Shown piece by piece: positions 3,806 to 64,000 of a stretch of DNA of 64,000 nucleotides (its first letter is position 1; each line of letters begins with the position of its first letter). The stretch is taken from NCBI GenBank assembly GCA_965113315.1, contig OZ220371.1; one strand, given 5' to 3'. The notes beneath the pieces are model-generated. The model ran no database searches. It saw only the letters and a program-made list of their open reading frames with translations, and had not been told where the DNA came from. The DNA is from Podarcis vaucheri. Lineage: Eukaryota. Position numbers and translations under genes: made by a program.

Positions 3806-4382
3806 TAAGAAATGCAGCAAGAAATGCTGGATTAAATGGGAATTGACTGAGTCAGGCCCTAGAGTAACGGTGCTGCTGCCTTTAAAAGCCAGTCTGAAAT
3901 ATTTTAGTCCTAAAATGCATTCCACGAGCCCTCGTGGGATATCTTGCCAGCCAAACTTTTGTTTTTTTGCTTGGCAGACAGAGCTTGAACACCTATTAAC
4001 CTTTGGTTGGAGAAACTGCGTTCGGATGAGCCCATCACTGTGATTCAGGCAATGCCCCTCTCCCGGTGCTTGCTTTGCTGGTTTCTAGGCCCTTGCTAGC
4101 AGAGGTTCCTATTCCTTGCTCATAATGCTAGGCCCTTGCTAACCTCCAACTCCAGGAGGCCCAGAATCTTCTTGGAGAAGGGATGCCCAGGAAGAGAGGC
4201 TCTCGTGATTGGGCGCTGCCGGGTCATGTGGCTTGAGAATGCATGCTTCTGATCCGGTTGGGGGAGGGGGACTCCATTGGCTCTTCCTGAGCAGTGGCAG
4301 TTAGAAGTGTTGCCTGGTGCTGGGGGATGCCACTTGGGGCTTCCATTTCCACCCAACCCCCTGTGCCCACCCATTCGACAAC

Positions 4383-4862
4383 ATGCTGGCCGCAGAGGGG
4401 CAGCAGTTTTTCGACCCTGTCTCTTTCGGGAAAGACCTCATGATAGGCGGGGTGGCGGCAGCTATCTCCAAGACGGCAGTAGCGCCCATTGAGCGCGTGA
4501 AACTGCTGCTGCAGGTCCAGGGCTCGTCCAAGCAGATCCGGGTTGACCAGCAGTACAAAGGCATGATAGACTGTTTTGTGCGCATCCCTCGGGAGCAAGG
4601 TACGTCTTCCTCAACAAATAGGCCCTCCTCGAAGGATTGGCGTGGTGTGAGAGCCACAAACGTTTGCCCCTTGTTTAAATCGTGCCTCAACTGTGAACAA
4701 AATAAGTGGCAATTCTGTTGTGCCAAGCCCCCTCACCAGCTGCAATAAGAGGCTAATAATTCTGGCCTACCTTTTGCGGTGGTTGTAAAGATTGTGGGAA
4801 AATGTGCTATTAAGTTCGCTGAATACCTAGCACAAAACAAATACTTATTACTAATACTCTGA

Positions 4863-4917
<55 letters not shown>

Positions 4918-7900
4918 CGTTTCTCCAAGGCAATATTGCAGCTTTTACATTTTTCCAATCTTTCCTTAAGGGCTGTGTGCTTCCAATGAGGCCTCACTTC
5001 CATATTCCTATATTGTTTTCATTCTGACCAAACAGTTGCACACTCCAGAGTACATAGCGCATAATATCCTTTTAACGTCCTTTCCCCCCTATTGTACAAC
5101 TCCCATCACCTTCCGGCTGCTTCCACCGCGCCAGGTTTCCCTAATTCATACTGACCTATCTACACATGCAAAATTAATACAGCATGCTCACATTTCAGCT
5201 AACGGAATATATTCACCCAGCAAGCAAGGATTTCTTCTGTAATATATACTCCTACTTCATAATATATACTCCAACATAATATATACTCCTACTTCTGTAA
5301 TATATACTCCAACAGAAATACAAGACTCCCACTGCACCACACGTGCAGCCTGATCCTAGATATGTCTGCTTGGAGCTAAGCCCCACTGAGTTCAGTGGGA
5401 CTTACTCCCAGGTCATTGCGTAGGATAGAAACTTAATTTGACTGCCTGGAATAATAGTTGAAGATCTCATAGGTGGTTATCTTTCTCCAAATAATTATTA
5501 TAACATTGTACACTGACCTGTGCCATGTATTTTTGTGCAGCTACTCTATTTATGCTGAATTCTAAGGGTGTTTTGTATTTTTAAATTACAATTGTCAGTG
5601 TAAGCAGTTCTTTGTGTTTATGGATTCCACTACAGTGCTGATTTGATTAGGAAAGTAGCAAATCTAAAACTACAAGTCCACTAAACAACTAGTTCCAAGT
5701 ACCTCCATATACCTTTAATTCAATAGGCATGGGATCTGTTTCCTTGCTATGTGTATATAGTGTTAATGTGCACTAAATCTGTAGTTTAGCGTGTCTTCAG
5801 TGTCTGTTTTACCAGCAAAATATTTAGCCTGGCTTATTTGGAGCCCACATCATGAAACAAAGATTCTGAGCATTTTAGCTGCAGTTCTAAACCACTTTTT
5901 ATTAAGAAATGTTTTACTGAACTCCACAGGACATACCAGACCAATCTGTGTAGAACTAGGCTGCTAGTGTTTGGGTAGTAAGGTGAAATAGGACAATACA
6001 AATGTGTTATCCCTAAAAGTGAAGTGAGCTTTTGGACCTAGTAAAGGAATATGTATCTTGAAGATATTTCAAAACAATTGGCAGTTCTTACCATGGCTTG
6101 ATGACTCTCAAACTGTGATACCTTTGTGCATTTAACTTGAAACATTTGGTTCCCGTTTTAGAGTTATTTTACATGATAGAAGATGTTCTTCTGAGAATGA
6201 ATGCCTTCGTTGTCTTCGTTTAAACACTACAGATTGAAGGTTGTCATATTAAATGTTGGGCGCAAGCTAAAATTTGTTCTATAAGTTGAATGAAATATGG
6301 ATTACCAACTGCTCAGACTTTTATTTTCCATGTCATTCAGTTACATAACTTTAATAAAATATGAACACAAAAATGAACATAATTATCTACTATTCTTCAT
6401 CAAATGTTGAAAGTATGCCCTTCATTTATGGTCTGCCAAGCTACTGAATAAAACAGGAAACATGCCCTGCTTGCTCTTATTAGCAAAAACATTAGTTTTA
6501 ACTTTTTTCATAACTATCTTTTGCACTCCTGTCTTGACAGCCACTGATCTTGGAAGCAATACTTTCCTTATCACTTTAAATTTAAATATTTGGTCCTGCA
6601 GTATAAGCCCTCTCCTTACAACTTGTACTCAACTGCAGTGGTCACAACAGTAAAGATCTTTCATCGTACTGAATGTTTACAGAAGCCTTGTTTTCCATCA
6701 GAATATATAGAGTGCCCATTACTGATTGCCATTATTTACCTTGGTGCCTGCAGATGCAACACTTTTCCATCCTTTGACTACTTTTTGTCTTGAACAGCTC
6801 TTACTTGCATGTTAAACTCATTTTCCACTGATCTAAACTCATCCTGTAAAATTGCCCTCTTTGACTTAACCAAGATTCTCAGATCTTTCCAATAATTCTT
6901 CCTCCTTCTCCCCCTTCCAGTTAACTGGTGCCCACAAGCTTTCGTATTGTTTGGCTTCATGCTCCTTTTCAGCTCTCTTTACATTCCTGCATTGAGACCT
7001 TGGCTTCTGGGGTCCTCAACATTTCCATTTGTCCCTTTGTTCGATTTTTCCTGTTCTCAAATGCTGCTCTTTTTATGTGGTATTTCCTCTTGAAATACAT
7101 ATGTAGTTTAATTCAAGTCTGCCTATCTCCCTTTCTTTTGCCTCTTCAGATCTTCCTCAAAGCCTAGTTTTGCCTTCACTTTCCCCAGCTCTCAGCAAAA
7201 CTCTTCCTCCAAAATAATTCCTTTTGTTGATCTAGTTTTCACTTAGTAAGGCACTAATACACTGCATCACCTGAGTCTTAGCAAGATCACCTGAGCCTGA
7301 AGAGCACAGTGGTCAGAATGTCTAAAATAATTTTTGTTTGGCTAATTCTGGTTATTTAAAATTTATGCATGTATGCCTCCAATGTACTGCAAAACCAAGT
7401 CCACCACTCCTTATTAAAATGGGTTTAGCACCCCCTCTGGTGGTGAAAACATAACCTAAAAAACATTTGTACAGTACAGTACTATTTTACTAAGACTAGG
7501 TTGTATATTTGATGGTGATCAAACATACAGATTTAGCATGCTTTACCATCACATGGGTGGCGCTGTGGGTTAAACCACAGAGCCCAGGACTTGCTAATCA
7601 GAAGGTCGGCGGTTCGAATCCCTGCGACGGGGTGAGCTCTCGTTGCTCGGTCCCAGCTCCTGCCAACCCAGCAGTTCAAAAGCATGTCAAAGTGCAAGTA
7701 GATAGATAGGTACCGCTCTGGCGGGAAGGTAAACGGCATTTCCGTGCGCTGCTCTGGCTCAGCAGAAGCGGCTTAGTCATGCTGGCCACATGACCCAGAA
7801 GCTCTACGCCAGCTCCCTTGGCCAATAAAGGAAGATGAGCACCGCAACCCCAGAGTCGGCCATTACTGGACCTAATGGTCAGGGGTCCCTTTACCTATAC

Positions 7901-10900
7901 CTTTACCTTACCATCACAGTGTGCTTTCTATTTCCTGCTGTTTATTTGCTAACTCTGGCTCTTTAAAGGATTAATAGCATCCAGCTTACTGCTATCGATG
8001 ATCTGAGCTTCCGTTTTTTCCACTGTTTGCATCTCTCTCTGCTTTTTAAAAAATCAGTACTGAGACAGTTGTACATAATTATAGGGAAGCTAGATTTGAG
8101 GTGAAAGAATTGGATGACCACTGCACATTGAACTCTCTATGGATTCACTTATATTCACTTATTCCACAAGTACCATTTCAAACATATTAATAGGTCCAAG
8201 TTCAGTACACATAAACATGTAGTTATACAACAGAAACAATTTAAGATCATGTCAACTGTACATTTTTTAATCTTCTGTCTGTAGGATTTGCCAGCTTCTG
8301 GCGTGGCAATCTTGCCAATGTTATCCGGTACTTCCCAACTCAAGCCCTAAACTTTGCTTTTAAGGACAAATACAAGCAGATTTTCATGGCTGGAGTGGAT
8401 AAAGATAAACAGGTAAATGTGGTCTAACATTTTGTTTATTGCTGATGTGTCCAAAACCATTTTGCTTGGGCCAAACATGAAGAAATTGGGATATCTTTTT
8501 GAATTATTAATAGTATACAGTACAGTTCAATAGGTGGTGTATAAAAGAGGCATTGGGATTTGTATTTAAGGAAAAAAGCTAACAAATATGAGTAATTGCG
8601 TGAACAATATTAATGCCCACTATATGTGACAAGTGGGACTTTGTAATAAAATGTTCAGGGTTACTGCCAACTCTTTTCCAGGATACTTCATTCCTGCTCT
8701 CCTCCCTACAAGTAGGCCAGTGCCCCAAAGTTACTGTGCATGCTCAGTCCTCACTGGGATATTTTGGGGCTACATCTTAGAGTTTTTACTGTGATTTTTG
8801 CTTGTACTTCTGCAAACCTTGGAGTTCACTGAAGCCTGCTGATAGCTCCTCTTGTTTGTGAATGGTGCTATTTGAGCAATGCAAGTCTGTACTCTGAAGA
8901 ATGAGCTTATTGGTGTAGGATGTTCCTACTTGAAGCTCAGTATCATGCTATTTACAAAGACATTCTTTATCTGAATTAGGCCTTAAAAAAAAAAAGTCCG
9001 GCTGGTACTTTAAGCCAAAATAAAAAAAGCAATTGCTCTTAGTAAGTGGAGCAAGCAATCCTCTCACTTCTTCCTGGAGCTCTCCAAACCTGTTTGACTT
9101 GACCAGTTGCATGGTATGCAGAGGCGTAAATCAGCAGTTTGGAAATGGTTTTCTGTTAATAGCACTGATGGTACTGACTGTTCCCCAGCTATGCTTTTTT
9201 GATCTGTAAAGGTGGATGCATGTATTTTCAAAGGACACCATCAGAGTGCAGAGCTGCTTCCTTCGAAAGAAATACTGAAAAGGCAGTCTTTAAGGGCAGG
9301 TTTACACATCACTGTTGTTCATCACTCTGTGACTGCAGCACAACATGAAAATTTGTGCATGTGAAAGTGCCATTGCAAATCAAGCTCTATAAGTATATAT
9401 TCGGGGGGAAAGAAAAATCAGTGGAAACAGTTCACACATTCAGCAACAGGACTAGTTCAGATATTTGTTTGGGCTGCTGTCCCCTCCCCCCAAAAAACCC
9501 ACTCATGCACAGTAATGTGTGAGGCCGTGATTTCAACATCAAAGTAAAGTGTGAGGTGACATTGTACTTTACACAGAATTTTTAGGCACTGTTGCAGCTG
9601 TGGAAATTACCGCTGTCTGTTTCTGATTCATATCTTTCCCATGTGCATTCCTGGGAGTATTTCTTATGGAGCAAAATAAATGTGTGAATTGATCCCAAGT
9701 GACGGGGATTTTGTGAATCAGCTTAAAGAGGGGACCCAACCCCACTAGATCCGCTTCCCTGGCTATGCCTCCCCATTTGCGATAGATACTTTAAACTGAG
9801 GTTTGGTAGGAAGCTCAAGGTTTGCGACTTGGAGAGGCGGTGCAGGAGTGCTCTGCCGGAGTTACGTCGGATCGAGGGGGGTTCACACAGGCACCCTAAG
9901 GGTGCCCTCCATTGGATGTGGAGAGCGGTCATTGTGAATCAGCCCTAACGTTCCACAGTTTGAGAAGGGGGATCGAATAACATACAATCACCTCAGCAAC
10001 ACAAAAGGGCATATAATATACTATACAGTGGTACCTCGGGTTACATACGCTTCAGGTTACATACGCTTCAGGTTACAGACTCTGCTAACCCAGAAATAGT
10101 GCTTCAGGTTAAGAACTTTGCTTCAGGATGAGAACAGAAATCGTGCTCCAGCGGCGCGGCAGCAGCAGGAGGCCCCATTAGCTAAAGTGGTGCTTCAGAT
10201 TAAGAACAGTTTCAAGTTAAGTACGGACCTCTGGAACGAATTAAGTACTTAACCCGAGGTACCACTGTATATGTATTTTGGGGACATCTTTTATTGCTCT
10301 GTAATCTTTGTTTGATATTGTAATGGGATTTTAAAGGGCTTTTTTCTAACAAGCTGGTTCATTTTCTTTCCTCCCAGTGCCTTCTGCATTGCCAGAAACT
10401 TACTGTCTAAAGCACCTGGTACTATTTCATGCTTAATGACCATTTACAAATACTCTGCATTTGGATTTAATACCTTGCATTGCATGCTCATTTTCTGTCA
10501 GTATTCATATGTAAGCCATTTCAGTTTTAAAGCTCTTACTCTGAAAGAACATGAAATACATCTTGACATACTTTGTGATATAAATGCTCCAAAGAGTAAA
10601 AGTCTTTTTGATTTTTTATATTATCATACTGATATTTTCAAATAAATAGTTTCAACATCTAGCTTAAGTTAGTTGTGTAATAACTCCTATTGAAACTGTA
10701 AAGTTCTAAATGCCAGTACCAAAAGATTCTGGGTCATATTTAACTAAGTTAAGGGTAAAGGTAAAGGTACCCCTGGCCGTACGGGCCAGTCTTGACAGAC
10801 TCTAGGGTTGTGCACCCATCTCACTTAAGAGGCCGGGGGCCAGCGCTGTCCGGAGACACTTCCAGGTCACGTGGCCAGCATGACTAAGCGGCATCTGGCG

Positions 10901-13900
10901 AGCCAGCGCAGCACACGGAAACGCCGTTTACCTTCCCGCTAGTAAGCGGTCCCTATTTATCTACTTGCACCCGGGGGTGCTTTCGAACTGCTAGGTGGGC
11001 AGGAGCTGGGACCGAACGACGGGAGCTCACCCGGCAGGGATTCGAACTGCCGACCTTTCGATCGGCAAGCCCTAGCCGCTGAGGCTTTTACCCACAGCGC
11101 CACCCGCGTCCCCCTAAGTTAAGGGTAGACCTGTTTAAATTAGGCCCATTAATATTAATAGGTCTACTCTGATAAAACTCAGTTGACTACCACTCAACCT
11201 TCCCCCAAAATGTAAACAAAAAAAATCTTCTACTTCAAAACACAGCCTTAACCTAGTTATTAAAAAATAACTTGTGGCACCATAAATACTGTACTAAATA
11301 TTCTATTATGGCAGAAGCCTTTATGGACCACAGTCTACTTCATCAGATGAATGAAGTGTTAAACTGAGTTACGTATGTGTGTATAAATAGATACACACAC
11401 ACATGGGGAAGGGGAGAAGGTAAACAATTGTGGTCACAGGTAAATGAAATGCAGTAAGTACGGTGACAGTGATAATTGCATAATTCAATCTGGTCATTCA
11501 TACAACTGTTGAGGGTAACACAGACATCCTGGCTTTGGTAAACCAATTATCATGAGTGCAATAATTAAAAAACAACAACTTTGTCCTGCTTCAAACTACA
11601 GGTTTGAGACTACACTGAACCTCTTGATGAATTATAATTCACTGGTTTCATCTTTCTGCCTCCCTTTGAAGTTCCTTTGTTACTCAATTTTCATGGCACA
11701 ATTTGTGTTGGGATGGATTTTGGGAAAGAGCCTCAGGTTGTCTAAAATTTGTTTTACACACAAGCCAAGTTTTGCCACCAAGTCTTGAGTTTGGTGCGCC
11801 CTTTGCAACGCAAGTTGTGGATTTTTCTCATGGGAATTTGCAAGAGGAAACTTCATTTTGAATTCCCTCAACTAAAATGTTGCCATCAAATCTAAGTTCC
11901 ATAGAACACTGTTGATTTATTCAAGTGTCGCCATTGGGAATACAAAAAACCCCAGTTATTTCAGGCTTGTGTCATCGCACCATTGCTTCAGGTATTTGTA
12001 ATAAAATAAAATAAAATGGAGGATTGTTACAAGCCCTGTTTTTGAACTCAGCAGTTTTTCCTTTTCAGTTCTGGAGGTGGTTTGTTTCAAATCTGGCTTC
12101 TGGTGGAGCAGCTGGAGCAACTTCATTGTGTGTGGTATATCCATTAGACTTTGCACGGACCCGGTTAGGTGCTGACATTGGAAAAGGTAAGAGCTTCATC
12201 TTCATATTTTAAGGGTTGTGTGCTGAGACTGGCAGTTTGTGTTTCTGCCTTCTTTGTGGTGGTGCCCCAGTTTATGGAGCTCCCTTCCTAGAAATAGGCA
12301 TTTGTTCCCTCCATTAACATCATTTTCATGTAACCTGGGGGGGGGGGGGTTCAACCCAACTGTTTAGTATGTGATGGGTAGTAGATTTTCAGCAGCTGTA
12401 TTTATTTTGAAAAATATGTTTTCCATGATGTTTTACCTGTTGTATGGCTCCTTATATGGCTCCCTAGGCTCCTTTGGGAAGAAGGACAGGATTAAAAAGT
12501 GAATTAATAGTAATAGTTCCCCTGTTCATTGTGGGGAATTCTTAGAGCTAAAGTGCTCCCCTAGTTATGTTATTTCCTCTTTCATTTTAGGTATGGAAGA
12601 GCGACAGTTCAAAGGACTTGCTGATTGTATTGGTAAAATTGCAAAAAAAGATGGCATTACCGGCCTATATCAAGGATTTGGTGTTTCAGTACAGGGGATC
12701 ATTGTATATCGGGCATCCTATTTTGGATGTTATGACACCATAAAAGTAAGTTTTCTGATCAAACTCACCCTTTCCCATTAAAAAAAAAGGATTATTTGTC
12801 ACCTTTATTATGGATGCATTTTACAGTATTTATCCTATCAGCTAAGATATTATTAATCCTATTGCAGAAACAGCTAAGACTTAAAAATAAAAAGACATGC
12901 CCAATTTGGTTTGTATTCCTTTAGTTTGTTATTATTTTATAAATTTAATAAATCTACTACATGATCCGGAGGAGCTCTGTGGTTACCTAATGGTTGATGA
13001 TAACACTTGTTTTAAAGCTAATTATTTCTACACATTTATTCTTCCCAATTTACTAATTGGTTCCTGAAGCCCAAAGGTCTGATGCAATATGATGCTCCTT
13101 TGCTCACAATGGCTGCCCTGTTGATTTAAAATGAGAAAGCAAGTTGACTGTTAAATTGGGCAGCCCTTGCAATCAAGATCTCAGTGTATTCATTGGACAT
13201 GGGGATGCTCATATGTATAGATAAAACATTTATACTATTTAGTTAATTAATGTGCCTCACAGATGAATCCTGTGCATTTTTATTTAGAAGTAAATCTCTT
13301 GTGATTTCCTGCTACAGAAACTGCTTTTAAGCTCTAAGAGATGCTAACCAGGACAGTCTCGTGTGGACTGCGAGAGATCTTGCAGGAGCCTCCCAGAGCC
13401 CACTTGAGACTTTCCCAAAGCCCAGTAAGCAAGCCTGAGAGCTTACTTTAACTTTTAATTTGTGTGATATCAGCTGGCCAGCTGCGAAGCATGTAAAGCT
13501 GCAATCGCACAAGTTAAATGTGCTTAAGTTGCAATCTTAATATATGTTATTTGCCCCCTCCCCCCCAAAAAAAATCATTTGGCTTGTTTGCCATGTGTAA
13601 AGTGTAAAACAAAAGGAGAAAAGAATATGTTTCCAACTACACTGACCATGTAAAATAATCCATTCAAAATACAATGCACTTAGGAAATTCTGAAGCAATA
13701 TAATGATTTGACAGCATCTTTTTTTCCATTTAGATTCTCAAGATACCCCAGTGAATTCTTATTTCTCTTTTCTCTTCTTAGGGAATGTTGCCAAATCCAA
13801 AAGAAACGCCATTTGTCGTATCTTTTGCAATAGCTCAAGCTGTGACTGTATTTTCTGGCATACTGTCATACCCCTTTGACACTGTCAGAAGACGCATGAT

Positions 13901-15428
13901 GATGCAGGTAAACAACATATACTTGCTGGTGTCTAAGCACAGGAGGCCTATCTAGAAGGGTAGAGTCCTGGGGGGAATTCTAGGAGGGGAAATATAAAAA
14001 AAATTCAAAGCTACACTCTTCTCCTGTCCCCCAACTGACATCCTTCAATTTGCATTTGCAGAGGCTCCTGCAGCCATTTTTATCAATCAGCTAATTGCAC
14101 AGCATAGCATATCACATATAACAAGCGCTATCACCAGGTCCCTCTCAGGTGGGGGGGGGAGCATTTCCCTGGGTATGTGGACCCTACATTCGGACCCTAC
14201 ATTTTGACCACAGATTTGTGTGGTTGCCCAGCTGGCTAGTCAGAAACACGTATTTGGCTGTTGATGTGCTGAGCAAACCAGGTGATTATGCTTTTTCATG
14301 GTTTAATTTTGAAGCAGCAGTGTGTGTCTCTGTGTTAAGAGAAATACATTTATTTTTATTCTTCTCCTGTTGCTGGTAAGGGGGCAGTAACCATCCTGTT
14401 GTCACCCTGTGGTGCAAAGAATGCAAGCTCTGTCGTGTGCTTTCTTGAAGGTCTGTGTACTTCAGCAATGTGGGTCTGCCTGACAGCTGTTTTATTTGCA
14501 AAAAGAGAAACAACTTATGTAATTTTATGTAATCTTCCTTCTGGATTTTTTTTTTTCAACATTAGAGACTTTTGAAAAGGAAGTATGCCAATTTGGAAGC
14601 AAGAGAAATTAATTTTTTATATCTTACAGATTTATATAGAATACTATTTGACTGTCTCAATATAAATATCTATCTTAAAAAATAGATTAAGAAAATTAGA
14701 TTCTCCAGTGTAAACATTTTGATGCAAACACATTTTTTTAAAATATCTATCAAAAAAACCATACTACCAACTTTGGGGAAATCTAAACACTTCTAGATTG
14801 GTACTTGGTGATGGGGGTGGGGAACCATGTGAAGTTCAGCGAAAAGGCAGTGAAGAACAATGTTCCAAAAATATGCTTCAGACATTATCCAAGAATCAGC
14901 ATGCTTCAAAACACCCTGAGGAATGACATGACCTTGTTTAACTCTGAAGCTTAAAAGAAACATCACAAGAAGATCACAGACTTGCTAAATTTAGCTGCAG
15001 AGAACTACATCAGGGAAGCATTTACTCATTAAGGTTCTTATATTGAAACAGAGATAAAATTAGTGAGAGGTGTTTCTAGACTTATAATTACAAAAATGCC
15101 TAATACTATATATCAGACCCTAAACTGAAAATTATAAAAATACCAAATGCCAGATTAGACCCTTGCCACATAGTAAGCACGTACATTTTCCAATCATCTG
15201 TCTTTGTTTAAAATTATTTTAACACAGAGTGGAGAGGCTGAACGTCAGTACAAAGGAACCATTGACTGCTTTTTCAAGATATACAACCAGGAAGGATTAA
15301 ATGCCTTTTTTCGGGGAGCGTTTTCAAATGTACTTCGTGGGACAGGCGGTGCCTTGGTGTTGGTCCTTTATGACAAAATTAAGGAGTTTCTTAATATTGA
15401 TCCATCAATAGGCCGATCATCTGACTAA
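4383..15428 (+). CDS. SLC25A31: ADP/ATP translocase 4 (ANT4), 6 coding exons: 4383-4599, 8285-8412, 12069-12186, 12591-12745, 13782-13907, 15228-15428; 314 aa
   Basis: All introns are GT-AG with matching phase, giving a 945-nt CDS. It has the mitochondrial carrier motifs [20 protein letters not shown] and [13 protein letters not shown] (ANT signature RRRMMM). The N-terminus [10 protein letters not shown], the C-terminal extension, the six-exon layout and the position between INTU and HSPA4L indicate ANT4 rather than ANT1-3. Confidence 0.97.
4865..4914. repeat. (TG)25 microsatellite in SLC25A31 intron 1
   Basis: Uninterrupted TG run. Confidence 0.95.
5234..5314. repeat. Short minisatellite: four copies of TAATATATACTCC with alternating TACTTC / AACA spacers
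   Basis: The core is visible at 5240, 5260, 5277 and 5298. Confidence 0.85.
7554..7907 (+). mobile_element. Sauria SINE (tRNA-derived head, Bov-B-related tail)
   Basis: A box GGTGGCGCTGTGG, B box GGTTCGAATCC and an (ACCTTT)-type tail. An 11-bp target-site duplication (TSD) TTACCATCACA lies at 7543-7553 and 7908-7918. Confidence 0.9.
10026..10267 (+). mobile_element. Tc1/mariner-pogo (Tigger-like) MITE, copy A
   Basis: Perfect 18-bp TIR CAGTGGTACCTCGGGTTA with TA on both sides; homologous to the copies at 19734 and 23690. Confidence 0.9.
10758..11113 (-). mobile_element. Sauria SINE of a different subfamily, antisense in SLC25A31 intron 2
   Basis: The reverse complement starts GGGGACGCGGGTGGCGCTGTGG and ends in an (ACCTTT)n tail. 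A perfect 14-bp TSD CTAAGTTAAGGGTA lies at 10744-10757 and 11114-11127. Confidence 0.9.
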
Positions 15429-23947: not shown

Positions 23948-24539
23948 TATTCAATTAACTGAGGTTCTACCCCCCAACCAAAGCCTGCCCCCCCATAATG
24001 TCCTATTTTGGGGGGTATATTTACCCATGATTTCTCAAAAAGCTCAACAACCTTGGTATCCTAGCTATGCCCATGGTCTCTGAAGTGAACTGTTTTCACT
24101 AGAAACCTCATCTGTGCCACTCCATAAATGTTTCTGGTCAGAGTAAATTGTAGGCCAAAGGCTTCACACCATAATGTATACTTTGCATAGCAACTGCCAC
24201 CTCCACCCCGTCGTCCCACTAACAACCATGTTTTCCCAAGATGCAAAACTTTATTACTATTGTATAAGTAATATATATATTGGACAACAGGAACACTTAA
24301 TATTTGTTTGCTTATGCAATACGATTGAGTTGTAGTGTTTCTCTTAATTTTTCCCCCTTTTACTATTATTTGCTCATCAGGCGCCTGGGAGCCCTATTTC
24401 AATAATTAACCAATCTCTCTCTGTGGATTTTCAATTCGTTGCTTAATTTATTTCTGCATAACAATATCTAGGCTGCTGGGCCGGCCTCTGTCATGTTAGG
24501 CCACTCCCAGAAATACTTTTTCCAAAGTCACATGTTCCT

Positions 24540-50809
<26,270 letters not shown>

Positions 50810-55185: not shown

Positions 55186-55321
55186 CAGGCGTAGGCAAAC
55201 TCTGGCCCTCCAGATGTTTGGGACTACAATTCCCATCATCCATAACCCATGTTCCTGTTAGCTAGGGATGATGGCAATTGTTGTCCCAAACATCTGGAGG
55301 GCCGGAGTTTGCCTATGCCTG
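55186..55321. mobile_element. Fold-back hAT-type MITE with 8-bp TSD
   Basis: Near-perfect inverted arms of about 55 bp start CAGGCGTAGGCAAACTC and end GAGTTTGCCTATGCCTG. The flanks are ATTTAAGC and ATTTAAGT. Confidence 0.85.
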
Positions 55322-56864
55322 ATTTAAGTGGCTAGTTTCTCACTTAAATTTGGTGTAAATTTAAATTGGCCACAATTCAATTATAGGTATTTATTTATCT
55401 GAGTCGGAATGCAGGCCTTGGTACTAGTTTGGGGGAGGGGTATGAATCCTTGGGGGATATGAATGAAAGAATCGGCTGTGTGCCTGGATTCAAAATGCAG
55501 GGCTGAATGAACTCTCCAGCAGGAAAGAGCCCCCAGTATCAGAGTTTAAACTCACAAAAGTCAAGCAGCACTATTGCATGGGAATATAGGCTATTAAACC
55601 CTTTTCATAACCCATTTAGTTGCACACATCACTCCTCTCTTTTTACCCCTCTGGCAATGAACAAACCACACACTGTTAGCTTAAAAAGCTTTACTTACAA
55701 AATGTTCCAAAAGTCAGATTCATGCATTTATCGAAGCAGCAGCAAGGAGAAGACAGAATATACAGAATGAAAACTTCAAACGCATGCCCTAAGCTTGCTC
55801 CTTGATCAGAGAGAGAACAGGAAGAGAAGGCTTCGCTTCCTAGCACATCAGAGAAGAGGGTGTGTGACATAGCCAAGTCTGGGAATACAGGTCTATTTTC
55901 TTAACCCATTCATGCAGTGACTAATATGCCCCCGCTCCATTGCTACTTAAATTAAGTAGGTATCTTACAAAAATCAGCAGATTAATAGGCCATAATTCAC
56001 AGTACAAGCTTCTCTACAGAGCTGTTATCCTACAGACCAATGTTGTCGTTTTTTGAGTTACCTTTCTGTATAAGTGGAAACTTTCCTGCTATCTTCCTTT
56101 CTTGCACACAGACACAATACACACAGAGAGATACCTAAGGTTCCAAAACAAGACTGTTTTATTTCCAGCCTTGCTTCAGAAGAGCTACTTTAAACAGCAG
56201 TTAGAATACCCAAGGCTGCCAGCTAGCAAGTTCAAGTCAGAAGTGTAAAATCATATTATGAAGAATGATCTTTGCAATTTCAAATTCATTTCCACAGTTT
56301 GGAATTTGGAATGGGTTCCTGTGAATATATTAGTATGTATGAGGAGGACAGAGGCTTGCTAAATTGCATTGCCCAATTAAAAAAAACACCATTTGCTATT
56401 TTGTTAGGATAAATTTGTGAATAGCAAAATGGTACAATTCTTGTAAGCTGCAAGGTGACTCCATTTAGTTTTCTCATAACAGGCATGTACCTCAAAACAC
56501 AGAAAAATGAAGGTGTGAATTGGGGAAATCAGTTCACCATAACGGAAGCTGAAGCTAAAGTCAATCAGCTGCCATGGCCAGGGTTCTACAGTCATTTTAT
56601 ATTTAGCAAGTGTTTTCTTATGTAAATGTGTCTCCATGGGACAGGAGTGTGTTCAGCTTGGATAACCTTATAGCAGTGTTTAAGTATGCAAAGTGTTTAT
56701 ATGTAAAGGATGGAATCCTTCATAGTTACATCATGCACAAATGGATGAATATGTCAGTTGATTTCCAAGTGGCAACACTTATTTACCAGAGATTGTGTGT
56801 AAAAATTTATAATAAATATTTAAATCTACTTCTTGAACCAGAAGTGATGTTCCCCTGAGACTTT

Positions 56865-56870
56865 TTTATT
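56865..56870 (-). terminator. Candidate poly(A) signal of the WD40 gene
   Basis: AATAAA on the minus strand about 230 nt after the TAA stop. Confidence 0.45.
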
Positions 56871-57101
56871 GCCACTAGTTTCAGCTTAATCTGCTACTGT
56901 AATACAGTAATCGTCCTAACCAATGGGATTATTGTCCACGAAGAGGACTGATCTCTTAACAGCCATCAAAGTTCTTTGGTCAGAAAAAAACACATCAGCA
57001 CACTTTATAAATTCTGCTTGCTTTTTACACATCATACATTTGAGAAAAGTTGCTTGGTTGCTTAAAGGCGGCCTCTGCCCTGCAGCCTGTCCAAGAAGCT
57101 G

Positions 57102-60100
57102 TTAAATTTCCAACTGAAATGGGTCATCAAGTTCTGCTGCTAGATTTGGTTTGTGGAAGGCAAGCTGTGTGTCGGCTAACTCACACAGTGGAAGAGAGTG
57201 ATAAGAATTTATTCGGTTTGCATCATGTTGAATAGGTTTCCACTGGAACTGCTTTGACCTGAAAGATAAATGGTGTGCTGTTTTCTTTCTGGCTAGTAGT
57301 TGTAAGAGGGATACGTTTCCAAATGACATAAAATTAAGACTTCTTAAATTTGAGAAATTAGATGAGGGAATGGGGAGAGAATAGATTATATGGATAGCTA
57401 GGAGTCTGGGAAACTTCTAACAAGGCACACAAAGGGAATGGTAGATGCAAAAAGCAGCTTTGAGAAATACATGTTGCTACTGTATCGCACACAGAGTCTG
57501 TGCACTTGAGTATGGACTCATCTGTCAACACAATTTAATTTTCAGTTGTCCTGTGTATTTTATAGAGTGCAGCATTCTATTATGCCATGCAAGACTTGCA
57601 TATCTGTTAGGCTAACCTAGTATGGGCCAGTATGTTGTCGGTGAATAAAGAGGATTTAAATTCAAGTTGTACACACCTGTGTAGTCTGTCTATCTGCCTT
57701 TGCTTCAGTTCTTCAGCAAGTTCATCATCTATTACCATCTTTGAAGTGCAAGTGTCCCAAATCATCTATGGGATAACATACCAGTCATTTAGGCTGGGTA
57801 GAGAAGTGCCCTCAAAGTACACAGGGAGCAATGATTTCCCAGAAAATAAAGGTTTTTGGTGAAACAGCAACTATAATTACAATGCTTTCCCAGAAGGGAG
57901 AAAGGGTTTGTGGGGTGAGTTGGTGACACAATTGTGCGGTATAATTTTAGCTTCGAAGCAAAGGGCGATAGTAGCAGTAGGACTAAGAAAAGGTAGTAAA
58001 ATGGTTGCAAGGTAGTAAAATACTTTCTAGAAGAAGAAGAAGAAGAAGAAGAAGAAGAAGAAGAAGAAGAAGAGGAGTTTGGATTTGATATCCCGCCTTT
58101 CACTCCCTTTAAGGAGTCTCAAAGCGGCTAACATTCTCCTTTCCCTTCCTCCCCCACAACAAACACTCTGTGAGGTGAGTGGGGCTGAGAGACTTCAAAG
58201 AAGTGTGACTGGCCCAAGGTCACCCAGCAGCTGCATGTGGAGGAGCGGAGACGCGAACCCGGTTCCCCTGATTACAAGACTACCGCTCTTAACCACTACA
58301 CCACACTGGCATATATTACAGATCAAATGTTATTTTTTGGCTCCAAAAGTAACAAAGTATTGTGTATAACGTGTTTAGCCATTAAATTATGTTTGGTATG
58401 TTAAAAGAACATAAATAAAAAGTAAATTTGATTTGAAATTATTTTGTTACAAAGAGCTAGAAGCTGCTGAACTGTAAGGAACCTAGCATCTCATTCTTAA
58501 AATTTAAGAGGAGCAGGCAAAAAAAAAATTAGCAAAACCAGGATAAGCCAACATAATAGTTTTTTAAAAAAAAATATTCTGAAAATTATGCTGTTTTCCA
58601 GTCCCTCCACGTGGCAAGCAGGCATAAACATTCATTTCCATAAAAAGAGCTGAGAAGAAGGCAGAGGACCAATACAGTACTCAATGAACACTTCATTAAA
58701 TTTTATCCCATTTTCTGATTCTTCATCTTTTTCATTATACTTATCAGAGGCTTGCAAAAATCGCAGATTTGTCCAGATTAAAAAAGCTATGCAGTTTCAC
58801 ATCTCAAGAGCTATTGAGCATGGGGAGGGGGAGTATACTGTTGAGTATTTCATGGGCTGCAGGCCACTTCATCAGATACATGAAATTTTATCCTTAATTA
58901 TCAAGAATATAATATACCTGATTTGGGGACAGGAGCCAGATGGCAATGAAGCCAAATGCTAATGTAAAGAAAAGACAATGGGAGATAGCTAATTTTTAAT
59001 CATAGTGGACCTTTTGAAATTAATGGACCTAACTTAGTCATGCTCATTAATTTCAATGTGTCTGCTCTAAATAAAACTCAAATACTGCCCAGTGATGATA
59101 ATATTCCTACCTCAGCATCCATTTTGGATTTCTTCTGTGTGTCAAAGGTTCTTGTAGATTCGTGTCCAAAAGAATCACAGCTATTTTCTGAACTCGGGTT
59201 GGATTCTGATAGTCCCCAAGATGACTTCTCTTTTATGTTCCATGGTTCTCTTTGACCAAATGTACCTTTTTTTAATTAAAAAAAAGTAAAGTTACTTTAA
59301 AATGTTATACTTGACTACCTCAGAATCTTCTCTGTTATGCATATATTCAACTTTTACTTGCATGTAGACAAAGGACTCTATCCAACCAAGTTGTCCTGTT
59401 AGATAAAAACATCTGCCTGCGCAATGAAATTTCTGCTCCCTTCCTCCCCCAACCAATCTTCTCCAAAGGGTTGGAGAAAACCACAGGACAGATTTGGGAG
59501 GACAACAAGAGAGTAAAGGAAGAGGAAGTCCCATTGTGCAGGTGGAAGACCTGCTAACTGAATAACTTGATTGGATACAACCCAAAATAAAGCTTTCAAA
59601 AAACCAAAACCACTGTTACAGTACTCGGGAATGAACAACCACATAAGAACATAACGAGAGCTTGCAGGATCAGACCAATGGCCCACCTAGACAAGCATCC
59701 TGTTCGCATAGTGGACACCTAGAGCATGCCTGTGGGAGACCTGCAAGCCGGACCTGAGCACAAGAGCAATCTCCAGCCCTATGCTTTCCAGAGACGTGTG
59801 CAAAAGCATTACGGCCTCAACCGTGGAGGACAAGCAGTAGCCATCATGGTTAGTAGCAATTGATAAGACTTCTGCTCCGTGACGATGCAGTGGTGATGGT
59901 TCCGTTCCAGATGCAATCAGAGAAAGTTTGATGTGGCAAAACAGGATAGGGGTATGTGGGTTGCAGACAGATCGTGCAGTGTGTGTATAGTTATCAGTTT
60001 GTGGGTGCAACAACTCCTTATTCCTGGGTCCAACAAGTGTTAAAATGTAAGCCAGGCTAGATTCGTGATGAGATTAAGAGAACATAGGATTAAGGGGGCT

Positions 60101-62783
60101 CTGTGCAATACAGCAAATAGGTAGGGCCCCTCCCTCAACTCACAGATAGAACGCCAAAAGCCAGAGTTTAGAGTTGAGTTTGGTTGTGTTGTGACCGAGA
60201 AGAAAAGCAGAAAGGCAGAGCACGATGTTTGATTTCTGTTTGAATTCAAGGCTGCTGCTATGGAGGAAACAATACTCTCTTGGGTTGTTGATGCTGTGAA
60301 CCCCTCCACTGTAGGCTTAAGTTGTATATATGTGTAAATAAACCATATATCAAAGAGACCACAGCTTCCACTGTACTCATTACCAAAAGGAAACATGAAC
60401 CCTGGGTAAGAGCCTGGAATCTCACACTGCTGGGAGATTGGAGTGGTGTGTAATAATGTATATGTATTTCCACCTAAAATTAAATCTTACCTATATATTC
60501 CCCTTTTAGGCTCCACAACTTTGCATTGTAGTCTAAAGAAGTAGTGAGGAGAAGCTGGTGCTCATTCATAAGGCTGATGCTACTCCATTGGAAAAAGAAA
60601 ATGGGTTTAATTTGTTATATTGACAACTGCTCTGAAAATAGGCACTGCTGCGGAATTTCCTTACTCTCTTAAACATCTTGTTTCTCAAGTTCTTTCCACA
60701 GCTAGAATGGCAATACTCGTAGAACTCCTCAATGCCAAACCATACCCACATGCCCAACATGCGACATCATATGTGATGTCACGTGTGGGGCAAATAAAGA
60801 TGCAGTTGAGCCAAAAGGGGGATACATGCCATACACAGTACTTTGCCAGCGCAGACAACTGACTGATGCTCAGGACTTGCAAAGCACAGTGCTGATTGTT
60901 GTGGCTTGCAATGGTGCTATGGAAAAACAGATCACCTATTGATATTGTGGTGTCATGTGCCTTTCAAATGCCGTTGTGATGTTGTGTGCCTTTCAAAGTT
61001 GGCCCATGGGGGAGGGGGAGATAAGCACCCAATCCACTGGCTGAATCCAGCTCCCCACTGCTCTTCTACAGGGTCTGTGCTTTCTTACCCAAGCAGGCAG
61101 TGCAGGCAAAAGAGCTAAACTGCCACCACCAGTGCACCATGAGAAGGTGGCCTAAAATGGAAGTAAAGGGAGCTTGTCCCCAATGGATTCACCAGCTCCT
61201 AATCTTTCCTCATGGGCCTTGTTTTCCTCAGCGTGTCTTACCCGGTTATGCTGCAGTTGTGAGTGTTCCAGCTGCGAAGTACTATTTGAAAAAAAGAAGG
61301 AGGGGAGACTAAGGTAAGGACATACTGTACACTCGGGAGCAAATATGAAACTTTTGGGTTTTGAATAAAAATGTTTCTCTCACAAACTGGTGGCTTGGCT
61401 TCTGGGCCATTAATGGCATATTCTGCAATGTTCCAGATATGGAGAAAGCCCAGTTGGTCTCCTGCACACAAGAGGAAGTCCTTGTCATCAACTGCCATGT
61501 CACTGACTGTGGATCTCTCTTTTGACTGCAAGCAAGGAAATAATAATAATCATACATACTGTACATACATACATACAATCATGTAACAAACTCATCCGTT
61601 AGCTGCTGGATTGTAGAAGCTTCAGTACTAAAGTTGTGGCGGAAATGTCCTTTAAGCGATGCATTATTTTATTTTTACTCTCTTTCAAGAGGGAGGACTA
61701 ACAGCATAATTCTGTGATGATGTTCTCAGAAATAAATTCAACCAAGTTCAATGGAACTCGCTCCCTGCCCTGCCTAGAAGGGTGTGTTGGATTGAAGCTT
61801 CCTTGCACTCTTAGGAGCACTTCGTTTCTTGTGTCACTTTTGGTGAATGATTAGTTTTGCATTTCAGTTGGTGCATGTGGTGAGATTTTAAGTGCAATTT
61901 CGGCATACACAGGCAGAAGTGCCTACATTTTAAGGCTGTCTTAAGCCAAGCAAACATGTGAAATGCATGCATCCAGCCCAACTATCAATAGGATATTGTT
62001 TACTCTTTATTTTGATTGCACATTATGTTACATATTAGGTTGATTCTAATGTAATACCAACCCATGGTTTTGTGCTATGCAAACAGGTTTGTTGGAGGGA
62101 ATAGGGTTGTGCATGCCCCACACTCTGTATCTCCTAAAGTAACCTGTTGCCCTCAGGGAGGGATACCACTGAGAGTCAGCTCTCAGTCTAGCTAGCTTCT
62201 GTATGTGGAAGCAGCAGGGTGGCATCTTGTCCTTTGTCTCTGATCACAAGATGCCCTGGGCTAGCACTGTCTCTGGGTTCACCTTGATGCTTAGACTACC
62301 ATCATATGAAAAGTCAGAAGAGGATACAGGCAAAGCCCTAATGCACAGAGCAATCCTATGCATATTTACTCAGAAGTCGATCCTACAGCATGCAACGGGG
62401 CTTACTCCCCCAGTAAGTGTAGCTAGCAGGGGTAGGGAACCTATGACATTCCAGATGTTACTGGACTCCAGCATGGATGGTGGTCTGCAAAGATGGGATT
62501 TGTGGTCTAGCAACATCTGGAGGACCACTAGCTACCCAGCCCTGGTGTTTAGGATTGCAACCTAAATGAATGTGTGCCACTTCCAGTTATGAATTATTTA
62601 GTTCTTATTTTGTTTGTTTCCAAACTGTTAGGAATCTCACAGCACTAATAAAAACATACAGAGGCCTTACAAATGGAAATTAGCAACATGTAAAACATTC
62701 TTCCAGAAAATGAGCAGCACTTACATTAGAGAAATAAGCAAAAAGGCTCCCACGGCCATATATATTCCAGAATGCAATATAAC
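57102..62783 (-). CDS. WD40-repeat protein, WDR49/WDR95-like; 3' seven coding exons: 62783-62725, 61525-61384, 61281-61242, 60579-60491, 59265-59111, 57765-57677, 57258-57102 (5' part outside the window)
   Basis: The seven GT-AG exons join in phase into about 242 aa with no internal stop: GYIAFWNIYGRGSLFAYFSN|SKERSTVSDMAVDDKDFLLCAGDQLGFLHIWNIAEYAINGPEAKPPV|LLRSWNTHNCSITG|ISLMNEHQLLLTTSLDYNAKLWSLKGEYIG|TFGQREPWNI...|MIWD...DDELAEELKQRQIDRLHR|SKQF...YHSLPLCEL...KPNLAAELDDPFQLEI*. There are three WD blade ends (FWN, IWN, LWS) and a GEYIGTFGQxxPW motif typical of the WDR49/WDR64/WDR95 group. Confidence 0.85.
58030..58310 (-). mobile_element. tRNA-derived squamate SINE (Squam3-like, L2-type 3' end) with (CTT)n tail
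   Basis: The minus strand begins GCCAGTGTGGTGTAGTGGTTAAGAGC (A box) and has GGGTTCGCGTCTCC (B-box-like). It ends in a (GAA)n run on the plus strand at 58030-58073. Confidence 0.8.
59645..59870 (-). mobile_element. CR1 LINE 3' UTR fragment
   Basis: AAGAACATAA...GGATCAGACCAATGGCCCACCTAG is the reverse complement of a reptilian CR1 3' terminus, and it resembles 27490-27620. Confidence 0.6.
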
Positions 62784-63254
62784 CTGGGAAATAACAGCAA
62801 TCACGGTATCAATAACAGTATCATATAGATGAAAATGAGATTTTCGGCATTCCCCCCTTAAAGTAGAAGAAGTCTGCCCTGTGGTTGGGGGTGGGGTGGG
62901 GGGTGTTGGTTTTCTGCTAGAAACTCTGAAACCTGAATTTTTTTCTCTGTACTGAAATGTTCATTCTGACCCTACAATGGTCACACAATAGGCTCTATAC
63001 TAAGACTATTTCAGAAAGCTTCTACAGATTAACATCCTTCCACAAATCTAGGTACTGATGCAAGGCCAAAGCCTCTTCTCAATATGCAGTTGGCAGAAGG
63101 AAGAAATTTTGAGTTGAATTTCTTAAGAAAGGATCTCCCTTGCTAAAATGCCTGTTTGATCTGAGTGCTTCTTTCAACAGCGCTAATCTTAAGAGGCATT
63201 GCCTCTTAAGTGTCAATGATTGAACAACATCCTGTTAATAATATTTTGTATTTG

Positions 63255-63485
63255 GGTATCACTCTCAGGTGCTTCAAAGTGCTTCCTGTGCATTAGCTAA
63301 CTGTCATCCTTACAGTAACCATGTAAGTCAGGATTATTCTCTCTCATATTGCAAATGGGGGGGGGACTGAAGGAGAGAGGGAGAGACTCTTACCTAAAGC
63401 CATTGAGTTAATGGCGGAGGTGAGTTTTGGACTGGGAGCTCCACCTGATTTGTAGCTCAGTCTCTTGGCCATGGTGCTGCACCAT
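63255..63485 (-). mobile_element. Old MIR/CORE-like SINE
   Basis: ATCCTTACAGTAACCATGTAAG...ATATTGCAAATGGGG...ACTGA...TTACCTAAAGCCA resembles the antisense CORE segment. It is heavily diverged. Confidence 0.5.
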
Positions 63486-64000
63486 CAAAGTCACAAGTGC
63501 TGCAACTTATGACAGCCTCAGGTGCCATCGGGGTGTTCCCACCCACCTCCCTGCCCTGCTTGCCTGATATTTGGATTGAGAGGAAAGCTCTAATGGCTAC
63601 AATGGTAGGTTTTTTCTCCCAATGACAATAGTCGGATCACTTCCATACCAACATTTAAAACGCTTTGTTTCTCCTAAGGAATCCCAGGAACTGTGGTTTG
63701 TTAAGGGTGCTGGAAATTATAGCTCTGTGAGGAGTAAACTGCAGTTCCCAGATTTCAGGGGGTGGGGAAGCAATGTTCTTTAAATATATGGTGTGAGGAA
63801 TGCAGCGGGAATGCAAGCCCCCAGCCTCCCAAATAACCTTTCACACAATTGATGGTTGTATGAATAGTGTCTTGCCTAGCCTGGCCCTGAAACACCCTTT
63901 GGACTGCAGGCCCTTGCACTGCATTGGCAGCCATTTTGAAAGGTTCCCCAATCTGTGAGCAGGTTTTTGGTGAGTACCTGGAGCCGTGAGAAGAATATGG

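Follow-up and report, generated by a model that had tools for sequence, protein, structure and literature searches.

Seven exons of a WD40-repeat gene lie convergent with HSPA4L

The DNA analysed here is a stretch of 64,000 nucleotides (nt), hereafter the window, from contig OZ220371.1 of the lizard Podarcis vaucheri (assembly GCA_965113315.1). At 57102-62783, on the minus strand, it holds the 3' end of a gene for a WD40-repeat protein, placed tail-to-tail with the HSP110-family gene HSPA4L. Seven exons together hold 243 codons with no stop or frameshift. Every acceptor carries AG and every donor GT, making all 12 splice sites canonical, and the phases carried across the exons run 1>0>1>2>1>0>2>0. 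A preliminary description of this DNA had proposed seven phase-consistent minus-strand exons ending about 6.3 kb from the HSPA4L stop. Both claims were borne out, with exon coordinates that proved exact at both ends and 6,293 bp between the stop codon of the WD gene (57104-57102) and that of the convergent HSPA4L (50807-50809).

The first four exons encode WD40 blades. Exon 1 (E1; 62725..62783, 59 nt) opens with two bases of a split glycine codon and encodes a blade strand (...YIAFWNIYGRGSLFAYFSN), and E2 (61384..61525, 142 nt) encodes a blade, SKERSTVSDMAVDDKDFLLCAGDQLGFLHIWNIAEYAINGPEAKPPV, and is followed by the donor GTGAGA at 61383. E3 (61242..61281, 40 nt) contributes LRSWNTHNCSIT plus split codons, and aligns to 'LLHSWNTHNCSIT' in the Podarcis muralis protein XP_028599198.2; E4 (60491..60579, 89 nt; ISLMNEHQLLLTTSLDYNAKLWSLKGEYI) forms the last blade and uses as its acceptor the second AG of a tandem agTAG. 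E5 (59111..59265, 155 nt) encodes TFGQREPWNIKEKSSW..., with a Ser/Glu-rich linker after it, and E6 (57677..57765, 89 nt) encodes MIWDTCTSKMVIDDELAEELKQRQIDRLH. E7 (57102..57258) is coding from 57258 to 57105, with 51 whole codons followed by the stop TAA at 57104-57102, and reads NSYHSLPLCEL...HKPNLAAELDDPFQLEI. The first candidate polyadenylation signal after the stop, an AATAAA on the minus strand at 56865..56870, is 232 nt away, with further minus-strand copies at 56163 and 55395, all from a pattern scan. The window covers the 3' third of the gene, 243 of about 860 codons; the next upstream exon (...EDLTINKIIFLLSRLEKKK...) was not found in 62784-64000.

Two other genes lie on the plus strand. 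SLC25A31 (ANT4), at 4305..15425, lies upstream of HSPA4L and consists of stop-free ADP/ATP-carrier segments, with Pfam Mito_carr on two exons. The HSP110-type gene, at 24971..50809, has its start codon at 24971, ends in '...SSEEMDVD' at 50806 and matches Pfam HSP70 on two exons. For one of its exons the best match in the PDB was human HSPH1 (6gfa, E 5e-38), above yeast Sse1 and ordinary HSP70s; we identify the gene as HSPA4L because its position follows SLC25A31, as in the published gene order. That order, INTU-ANT4/SLC25A31-HSPA4L-PLK4-MFSD8 in human and anole (PMC3155547), agrees with the human order INTU-SLC25A31-HSPA4L-PLK4 given in the preliminary description. Published gene orders for human, anole and chicken list no WD gene in the interval from HSPA4L to PLK4 (PMC3155547). 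A GC-rich island at 24000-26000 (GC 0.53, surroundings about 0.40) spans the first coding exon of HSPA4L, and is presumably its promoter CpG island.

The exons match a gene predicted intact in other lacertids

We searched exon 2 against 1.84 billion proteins with phmmer, and recovered Lacerta agilis XP_033016723.1 (98% identical, E 8.5e-24) and Podarcis raffonei XP_053259301.1 (91% identical, E 1.1e-19), together with partial or full matches to Varanus, turtle, coelacanth and frog proteins. A search with a Xenopus protein from the group that we call clade S below returned P. muralis XP_028599198.2, an 860-amino-acid (aa) protein named 'cilia- and flagella-associated protein 337-like'. The window exons were compared singly, and this protein was used as a stand-in for the whole. 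The seven exons align one by one to its residues 618-860, both spans having 243 residues, with 86-100% identity per exon. In a tblastn search of XP_028599198.2 against the window, per-exon E values ranged from 1.5e-28 (E7) to 2.2e-6 (E1, 20 aa). E1 is identical at 18/20 positions (residues 618-637), E2 and E3 together at 58/60, and E5 at 50/53 (residues 728-780); E6 matches from residue 780, and E7 is identical to the C-terminus at all 52 of 52 positions. Proteins of 860 aa from Zootoca vivipara and models of 857-921 aa from P. lilfordi fall in the 90% cluster of XP_028599198.2.

Pfam searches on single WD exons gave nothing usable beyond a weak beta-propeller match for E4, the PDB matches of exon 2 were generic WD40 repeats, and a protein-atlas search gave leads at family level only. 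A word-index search with exon 2 (46 aa), for which only short proteins were eligible, yielded no candidate. XP_028599198.2 as a whole matched WD40 at 4.8e-38, with many propeller families over residues ~260-660, and the tandem WD40 propeller of the CFAP337 family is thus found both in the complete protein and, as blades, in E1-E4. We conclude that the window very probably holds the 3' third of a functional protein-coding gene, the orthologue of the lacertid RefSeq gene called 'CFAP337-like', 'WDR49-like' or 'WDR64-like', within paralogue group S. Relatives already have intact predictions of the gene, which is present in RefSeq under generic, inconsistent names.

RNA from a close relative spans all six introns

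The segment 57000-62900 (5,901 letters) was covered by three contig runs, from three studies and taken as RNA by guess, and by one raw stranded RNA sequencing (RNA-seq) run. All four are from one source, organism A, a close relative that differs from the window by about 2%; X1 and X5 denote contigs and X23 raw reads. Coverage of the WD exons in organism A was low (depth 2-8), and junctions in contigs or reads spanned each of the six introns of the WD gene. The E6/E7 junction (57258|57677) was found in an X5 contig, E5/E6 (57765|59111) in two contig runs (X1 and X5) and one raw X23 read, E4/E5 (59262(+3)|60488) in X1 and X5 contigs, and E2/E3 (61281|61384) in an X1 contig. These four and the E1/E2 junction (61525|62727) have CT..AC ends, which are GT..AG on the minus strand. 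The E1/E2 junction was present in an X5 contig and two raw X23 reads, with a two-letter difference that turns Asn into Ser. For E3/E4 (60581|61244), seen in an X1 contig, organism A reads ACC-AGC-ATC, which gives ...CSIT-S/G-ISLM... and the length of the Podarcis protein. A non-canonical AC..CC splice at this junction was considered and rejected, as the tandem acceptor agTAG and a G/A difference in organism A explain the ends.

In the raw junction reads the first mate lies on the plus strand, as expected of minus-strand RNA in a deoxyuridine triphosphate (dUTP) library. The preliminary description had named a lack of junction reads, together with dN/dS near 1, as grounds for refutation; reads or contigs from a close relative cross every intron. 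Within 35 bp of the E5 linker (59162-59196), the window and organism A differ at six places, five of which change a residue, and the organism-A version (..ETTSDSFGQ..) is that of P. raffonei. We therefore regard the RNA evidence as coming from a congener. The E5 linker is a fast-evolving, Ser/Glu-rich segment.

Other features were noted in and around this segment. One contig joins E3 to E5 (59267|61244) and skips exon 4, which would shift the frame. An open frame that continues through the E6 donor (57610-57765) ends in ...RLHRCVQLEFKSSLFTDNILAHTRLA and a stop, and P. raffonei XP_053259301.1 stops likewise; such a read-through isoform would be without the conserved C-terminal motif described below. 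At 55250-57607, organism-A contigs of 1.5-2.3 kb take in exon 7 along with the greater part of intron 6, and extend 0.9-1.75 kb beyond the stop. The first mate of the raw stranded reads in this part lies on the minus strand, opposite to the junction reads of the WD gene, which suggests that a plus-strand transcript, perhaps a long HSPA4L 3' untranslated region or read-through, overlaps the end of the WD gene. Finally, an intronic repeat resembling a short interspersed element at 58000-58378, beside (TCT)n at 58021-58082, showed an enormous RNA depth when summed (tens of thousands of contig words), and smaller high-depth repeats lie at 59013-59058, 60150-60350 and 62319-62712.

Two old clades of the family are present in jawed vertebrates

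The family to which these proteins belong is axonemal and comprises FAP337/CFAP337, WDR49, WDR64 and WDR95, possibly with EFCAB8 (PMC6761771). We built a maximum-likelihood (ML) tree of 51 proteins and 1084 columns under LG+C20+F+G4 with posterior mean site frequencies (PMSF), with support given as ultrafast bootstrap/Shimodaira-Hasegawa-like approximate likelihood ratio test (SH-aLRT); quick versions were also built. The tree took in neither WDR49 nor EFCAB8, and XP_028599198.2 represented the window gene. It contains two clades, which we call S and L, each with 100/100 support and with a branching order that agrees with the species tree, sharks upward. The invertebrate proteins, one per species, fall outside S and L together (100/100). 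XP_028599198.2 belongs to the family by full-length similarity and by its placement in the tree.

Clade S consists of proteins of about 840-900 aa from sharks, sturgeon, bowfin, coelacanth, lungfish, caecilian, salamander, frogs, turtles, geckos, Hemicordylus and three lacertids. A gar S-type protein, XP_069045839.1 (882 aa), stands outside the tree and was assigned by its C-terminal match to exon 7 of the window. Clade L consists of longer proteins (about 1000-1100 aa), in fishes from chimaera, sharks, bichir, sturgeon, gar, teleosts, lungfish and coelacanth, and in tetrapods from amphibians, turtle, alligator, tinamou, snake, anole, gecko, lacertids, monotreme, marsupial, carnivore and rodents. 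We equate clade L with WDR95 because the hamster cluster within it carries Wdr95 names: 'Wdr95' in Phodopus roborovskii and 'WD40 repeat domain 95' in Cricetulus griseus. No primates appear among the matches listed for the Xenopus S and snake L searches, consistent with the human WDR95P being a pseudogene, and no mammalian WDR49 appears in the score range among the same matches. The alligator L models are fused with TEX26, which we take to flank human WDR95P opposite HSPH1.

All four lacertids examined carry S and L genes on different contigs. The S and L genes lie on contigs of 83.7 and 107.5 Mb in P. muralis (L protein XP_028582280.2), 78.3 and 102.3 Mb in Zootoca vivipara (XP_034971548.2), 74.8 and 100.7 Mb in L. 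agilis (XP_033002345.1), and 77.0 and 103.1 Mb in P. lilfordi (CAI5773096.1). Within P. lilfordi, the two proteins share 43% identity over 737 aa, with S residue 7 opposite L residue 214. The solved WDR64 structure (PDB 9fqr, chain No) is equally remote from both, at 144 bits against S (E 5e-41, one matched stretch) and 141 bits against L.

Judged by this tree, clade S is an old paralogue group of jawed vertebrates, separate from WDR95. The S proteins do not nest with rodent Wdr95, and the neighbour of the window gene is HSPA4L rather than HSPH1 or TEX26. The preliminary description had suggested a family member beside HSPA4L distinct from WDR95, kept by this lizard while mammals kept the WD gene beside HSPH1. 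The first part stands, with S and L each at 100/100 and each spanning gnathostomes. The picture of one gene per lineage does not, as lizards keep both.

Clade S lacks the EF-hand region and is patchily distributed in predicted proteomes

No EF-hand entry of Pfam was found in any S row, and one is present in most L rows. S proteins are without the N-terminal MPLGKK.RPSSA motif and the EF-hand region, and begin at about residue 214 of WDR95-type proteins; the N-terminal EF-hand of the CFAP337 family is thus absent from the S-clade rows, and the N-terminus of the window gene itself lies outside the window. The short WDR49 isoform is also without an EF-hand, and we treat this absence as a variant feature, not as exclusion from the family. 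At the other end, E7 encodes, as NSYHSLPLCELADTQLAFHKPNLAAELDDPFQLEI, a C-terminal motif (..Y[HQ][ST]L.[CY].[ED]L.....KP[ND].[AS]A...DP[FY]..) that is common to Nematostella, Branchiostoma, S and L proteins; S proteins end right after it. That this motif is a hallmark of the family is our reading of these sequences and not a published definition.

In the Xenopus S search, matches above 750 bits with a stated origin came from amphibians, lungfish, coelacanth, turtle, gecko, lacertid, cordylid, sturgeon, bowfin and shark. The sole exception above that score, a 1505-aa protein at 1002 bits, is from a source that names no organism. In the predicted proteomes searched, the proteins of mammals, birds, crocodilians, snakes, iguanians and teleosts fell only in clade L. 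An intact S orthologue would be expected to score at least about 800 bits, so no annotated intact S gene is present here in mammals, birds, crocodilians, snakes, iguanians or teleosts, an absence from predicted proteomes that is not proof of loss, no search having been made for remnants in DNA. A family member of the sawshark Pristiophorus japonicus (1281 aa) is broken by an integrase-like stretch (...FATHGLPNIIVSDNGSCFTS...); this transposon-like insertion is probably an artefact of the gene model.

A duplicated pair of convergent genes may account for S and WDR95

Three observations concern the neighbours of these genes. The S gene lies beside HSPA4L in this window. In human, the variant rs77197167 at 13q12.3 is listed as intergenic between 'WDR95P, HSPH1' (PMC7890067), which agrees with the adjacency given in the preliminary description, and the fusion of alligator L models with TEX26 offers a hint of the same neighbourhood. 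The preliminary description had suggested that an ancestral pair was duplicated along with vertebrate genomes, and both S and L occur in bony as well as cartilaginous vertebrates, while the copies of invertebrates branch outside both. In the scenario that we propose, an ancestral convergent HSP110/WD pair would have been doubled in the early vertebrate genome duplications, yielding S-HSPA4L and WDR95-HSPH1, with S lost later in mammals, birds, crocodilians and teleosts. The scenario fits the two convergent HSP110/WD pairs, with paralogues on both sides, and the two clades that reach back to cartilaginous fishes. On balance we favour a common origin of S and WDR95 alongside HSPA4L and HSPH1, by duplication of a convergent pair.

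A fuller version of this history can be offered tentatively, and we would put it slightly short of an even chance. S may be a fifth, unnamed vertebrate subfamily, born with HSPA4L, that lost its EF-hand early. Independent losses of S would have followed in mammals, birds, crocodilians and teleosts, and perhaps in snakes and iguanians. The S product would serve as a calcium-insensitive, tissue-specific replacement for CFAP337/WDR95 at the CCDC96/113 site in cilia or sperm tails.

Alternative explanations

One alternative, that the gene is WDR95 (or WDR64) itself, moved beside HSPA4L in lizards, would fit the names 'WDR64-like', 'WDR49-like' and 'WD40 repeat domain 95' that sit on S-clade proteins. 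We give it practically no credence, since S and L form separate 100/100 clades, lacertid L genes lie on another chromosome, and the solved WDR64 scores just 144 bits against the S protein. It is also very improbable, if less extremely so, that the exons are a decaying remnant, be it a transcribed pseudogene or a gene truncated at its 5' end here. The 243 codons carry no stop or frameshift, none of the 12 splice sites is non-canonical and the length is that of the P. muralis protein; the C-terminal motif is 52/52 identical to P. muralis, and P. muralis and Zootoca both have full-length models of 860 aa. S has also kept the shape of the species tree since the split from sharks, and between Podarcis and Zootoca it changes at no higher rate than WDR95 (protein distances of 0.054 for S versus 0.046 for L on the ML tree). 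What such a remnant would explain are the fragmentary models of some relatives (453-aa and 139-aa models in L. agilis, and in P. raffonei one of 217 aa that ends in intron read-through), the junction that skips exon 4, the reads over intron 6, and an excess of replacements over silent changes in the small organism-A sample.

A more serious contender, which we nonetheless consider unlikely, accepts that S is real and holds that the split between S and WDR95 was an independent, small-scale or older duplication, the adjacency to HSP110 genes being coincidental or the product of later rearrangement. S and L reach back to cartilaginous fishes with the invertebrates outside at 100/100, which is the timing expected of the early duplications, and two convergent HSP110/WD pairs with paralogues on both sides (this window; PMC7890067) are unlikely by chance. 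This alternative draws on points that also weigh against duplication of a convergent pair. The linkage of S to HSPA4L was seen in one genome, that of this window. The lamprey protein has no firm place relative to S and L (support 66/61), and WDR49, WDR64 and EFCAB8 are outside the tree, so that the ranking of S as the closest paralogue of WDR95 would rest on the order of scores and on one Ensembl-derived gar label. Further points weigh against our account of S more broadly. With the last 243 codons in the window, the remainder of the gene is presumed intact from the annotations of relatives. The RNA is from organism A, a congener about 2% different, at a depth of 2-8 and with three of the four runs guessed to be RNA. 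Among the listed exon differences between the window and organism A, replacements stand to silent changes at about 7:3, five of the seven replacements lying in the E5 linker; this is a small, selective sample that shows no strong constraint on the C-terminal part. The function of clade S, finally, is predicted, by likeness to CFAP337 and WDR64.

Names and significance

The names given to these genes follow neither clade. The S gene of X. tropicalis is named 'WDR64' and a gar S fragment 'WD40 repeat domain 95', the latter an Ensembl-derived label, and across species S genes appear as WDR49-like, WDR64, WDR64-like, 'WD repeat protein on Y chromosome-like', CFAP337-like and 'WD40 repeat domain 95'. 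In hamsters the products of Wdr95 go under 'WDR49', and the alligator L models are called 'testis-expressed sequence 26' owing to the fusion with the neighbouring gene. Our literature search found no paper on the evolution of the CFAP337-WDR49-WDR64-WDR95 family.

The result tidies misleading database names in the CFAP337-type family, and adds an unnamed member to a known family; it reveals no new gene type or mechanism. If the proposed origin holds, HSP110 and WD40 genes form a clean paired-gene paralogon with differential loss. S proteins also provide a natural EF-hand-less variant of CFAP337 for comparison in Xenopus, turtles and lizards.

Comparison with CFAP337, WDR64, WDR49 and WDR95

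CFAP337/FAP337 is an axonemal protein that requires FAP57 and forms part of the CCDC96/CCDC113 complex, which connects the nexin-dynein regulatory complex to inner dynein arm g (PMC6761771, PMC11639810). WDR64 attaches to the CCDC96/113 coiled coil in sperm, where it has been proposed as a sperm-specific paralogue of, and stand-in for, WDR49 (PMC11779644). Mouse Wdr95 is testis-enriched and without a human orthologue, and its knockout is fertile (PMC13253961). By analogy with CFAP337 and WDR64, the S protein would most likely attach to the doublet microtubules of cilia or sperm at the CCDC96/CCDC113-CFAP57 region, without calcium sensing.

CFAP337/FAP337 of Chlamydomonas and Tetrahymena and the invertebrate orthologues resemble S in sequence (more than 90% of the Xenopus S protein aligns at 37-41% identity) and in the C-terminal motif, but, unlike S, the invertebrate and algal members have the EF-hand region at their N-terminus. 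WDR64 is of the same family as S and sets a precedent for tissue-specific swapping of paralogues, although its sequence is remote at 144 bits. The relation of S to WDR49 was judged from the absence of WDR49 among the high-scoring matches listed. WDR95 shares with S the tandem WD40 architecture, the C-terminal motif (Y-x-S/T-L...KP..AA/SA..DP), an equal age and an HSP110 neighbour (at WDR95P). S differs from it at the N-terminus, where it is about 210 residues shorter and has neither the MPLGKK.RPSSA motif nor the EF-hand, and in ending right after the C-terminal motif; S also lies beside HSPA4L, not HSPH1, and no mammalian S was found in our searches.

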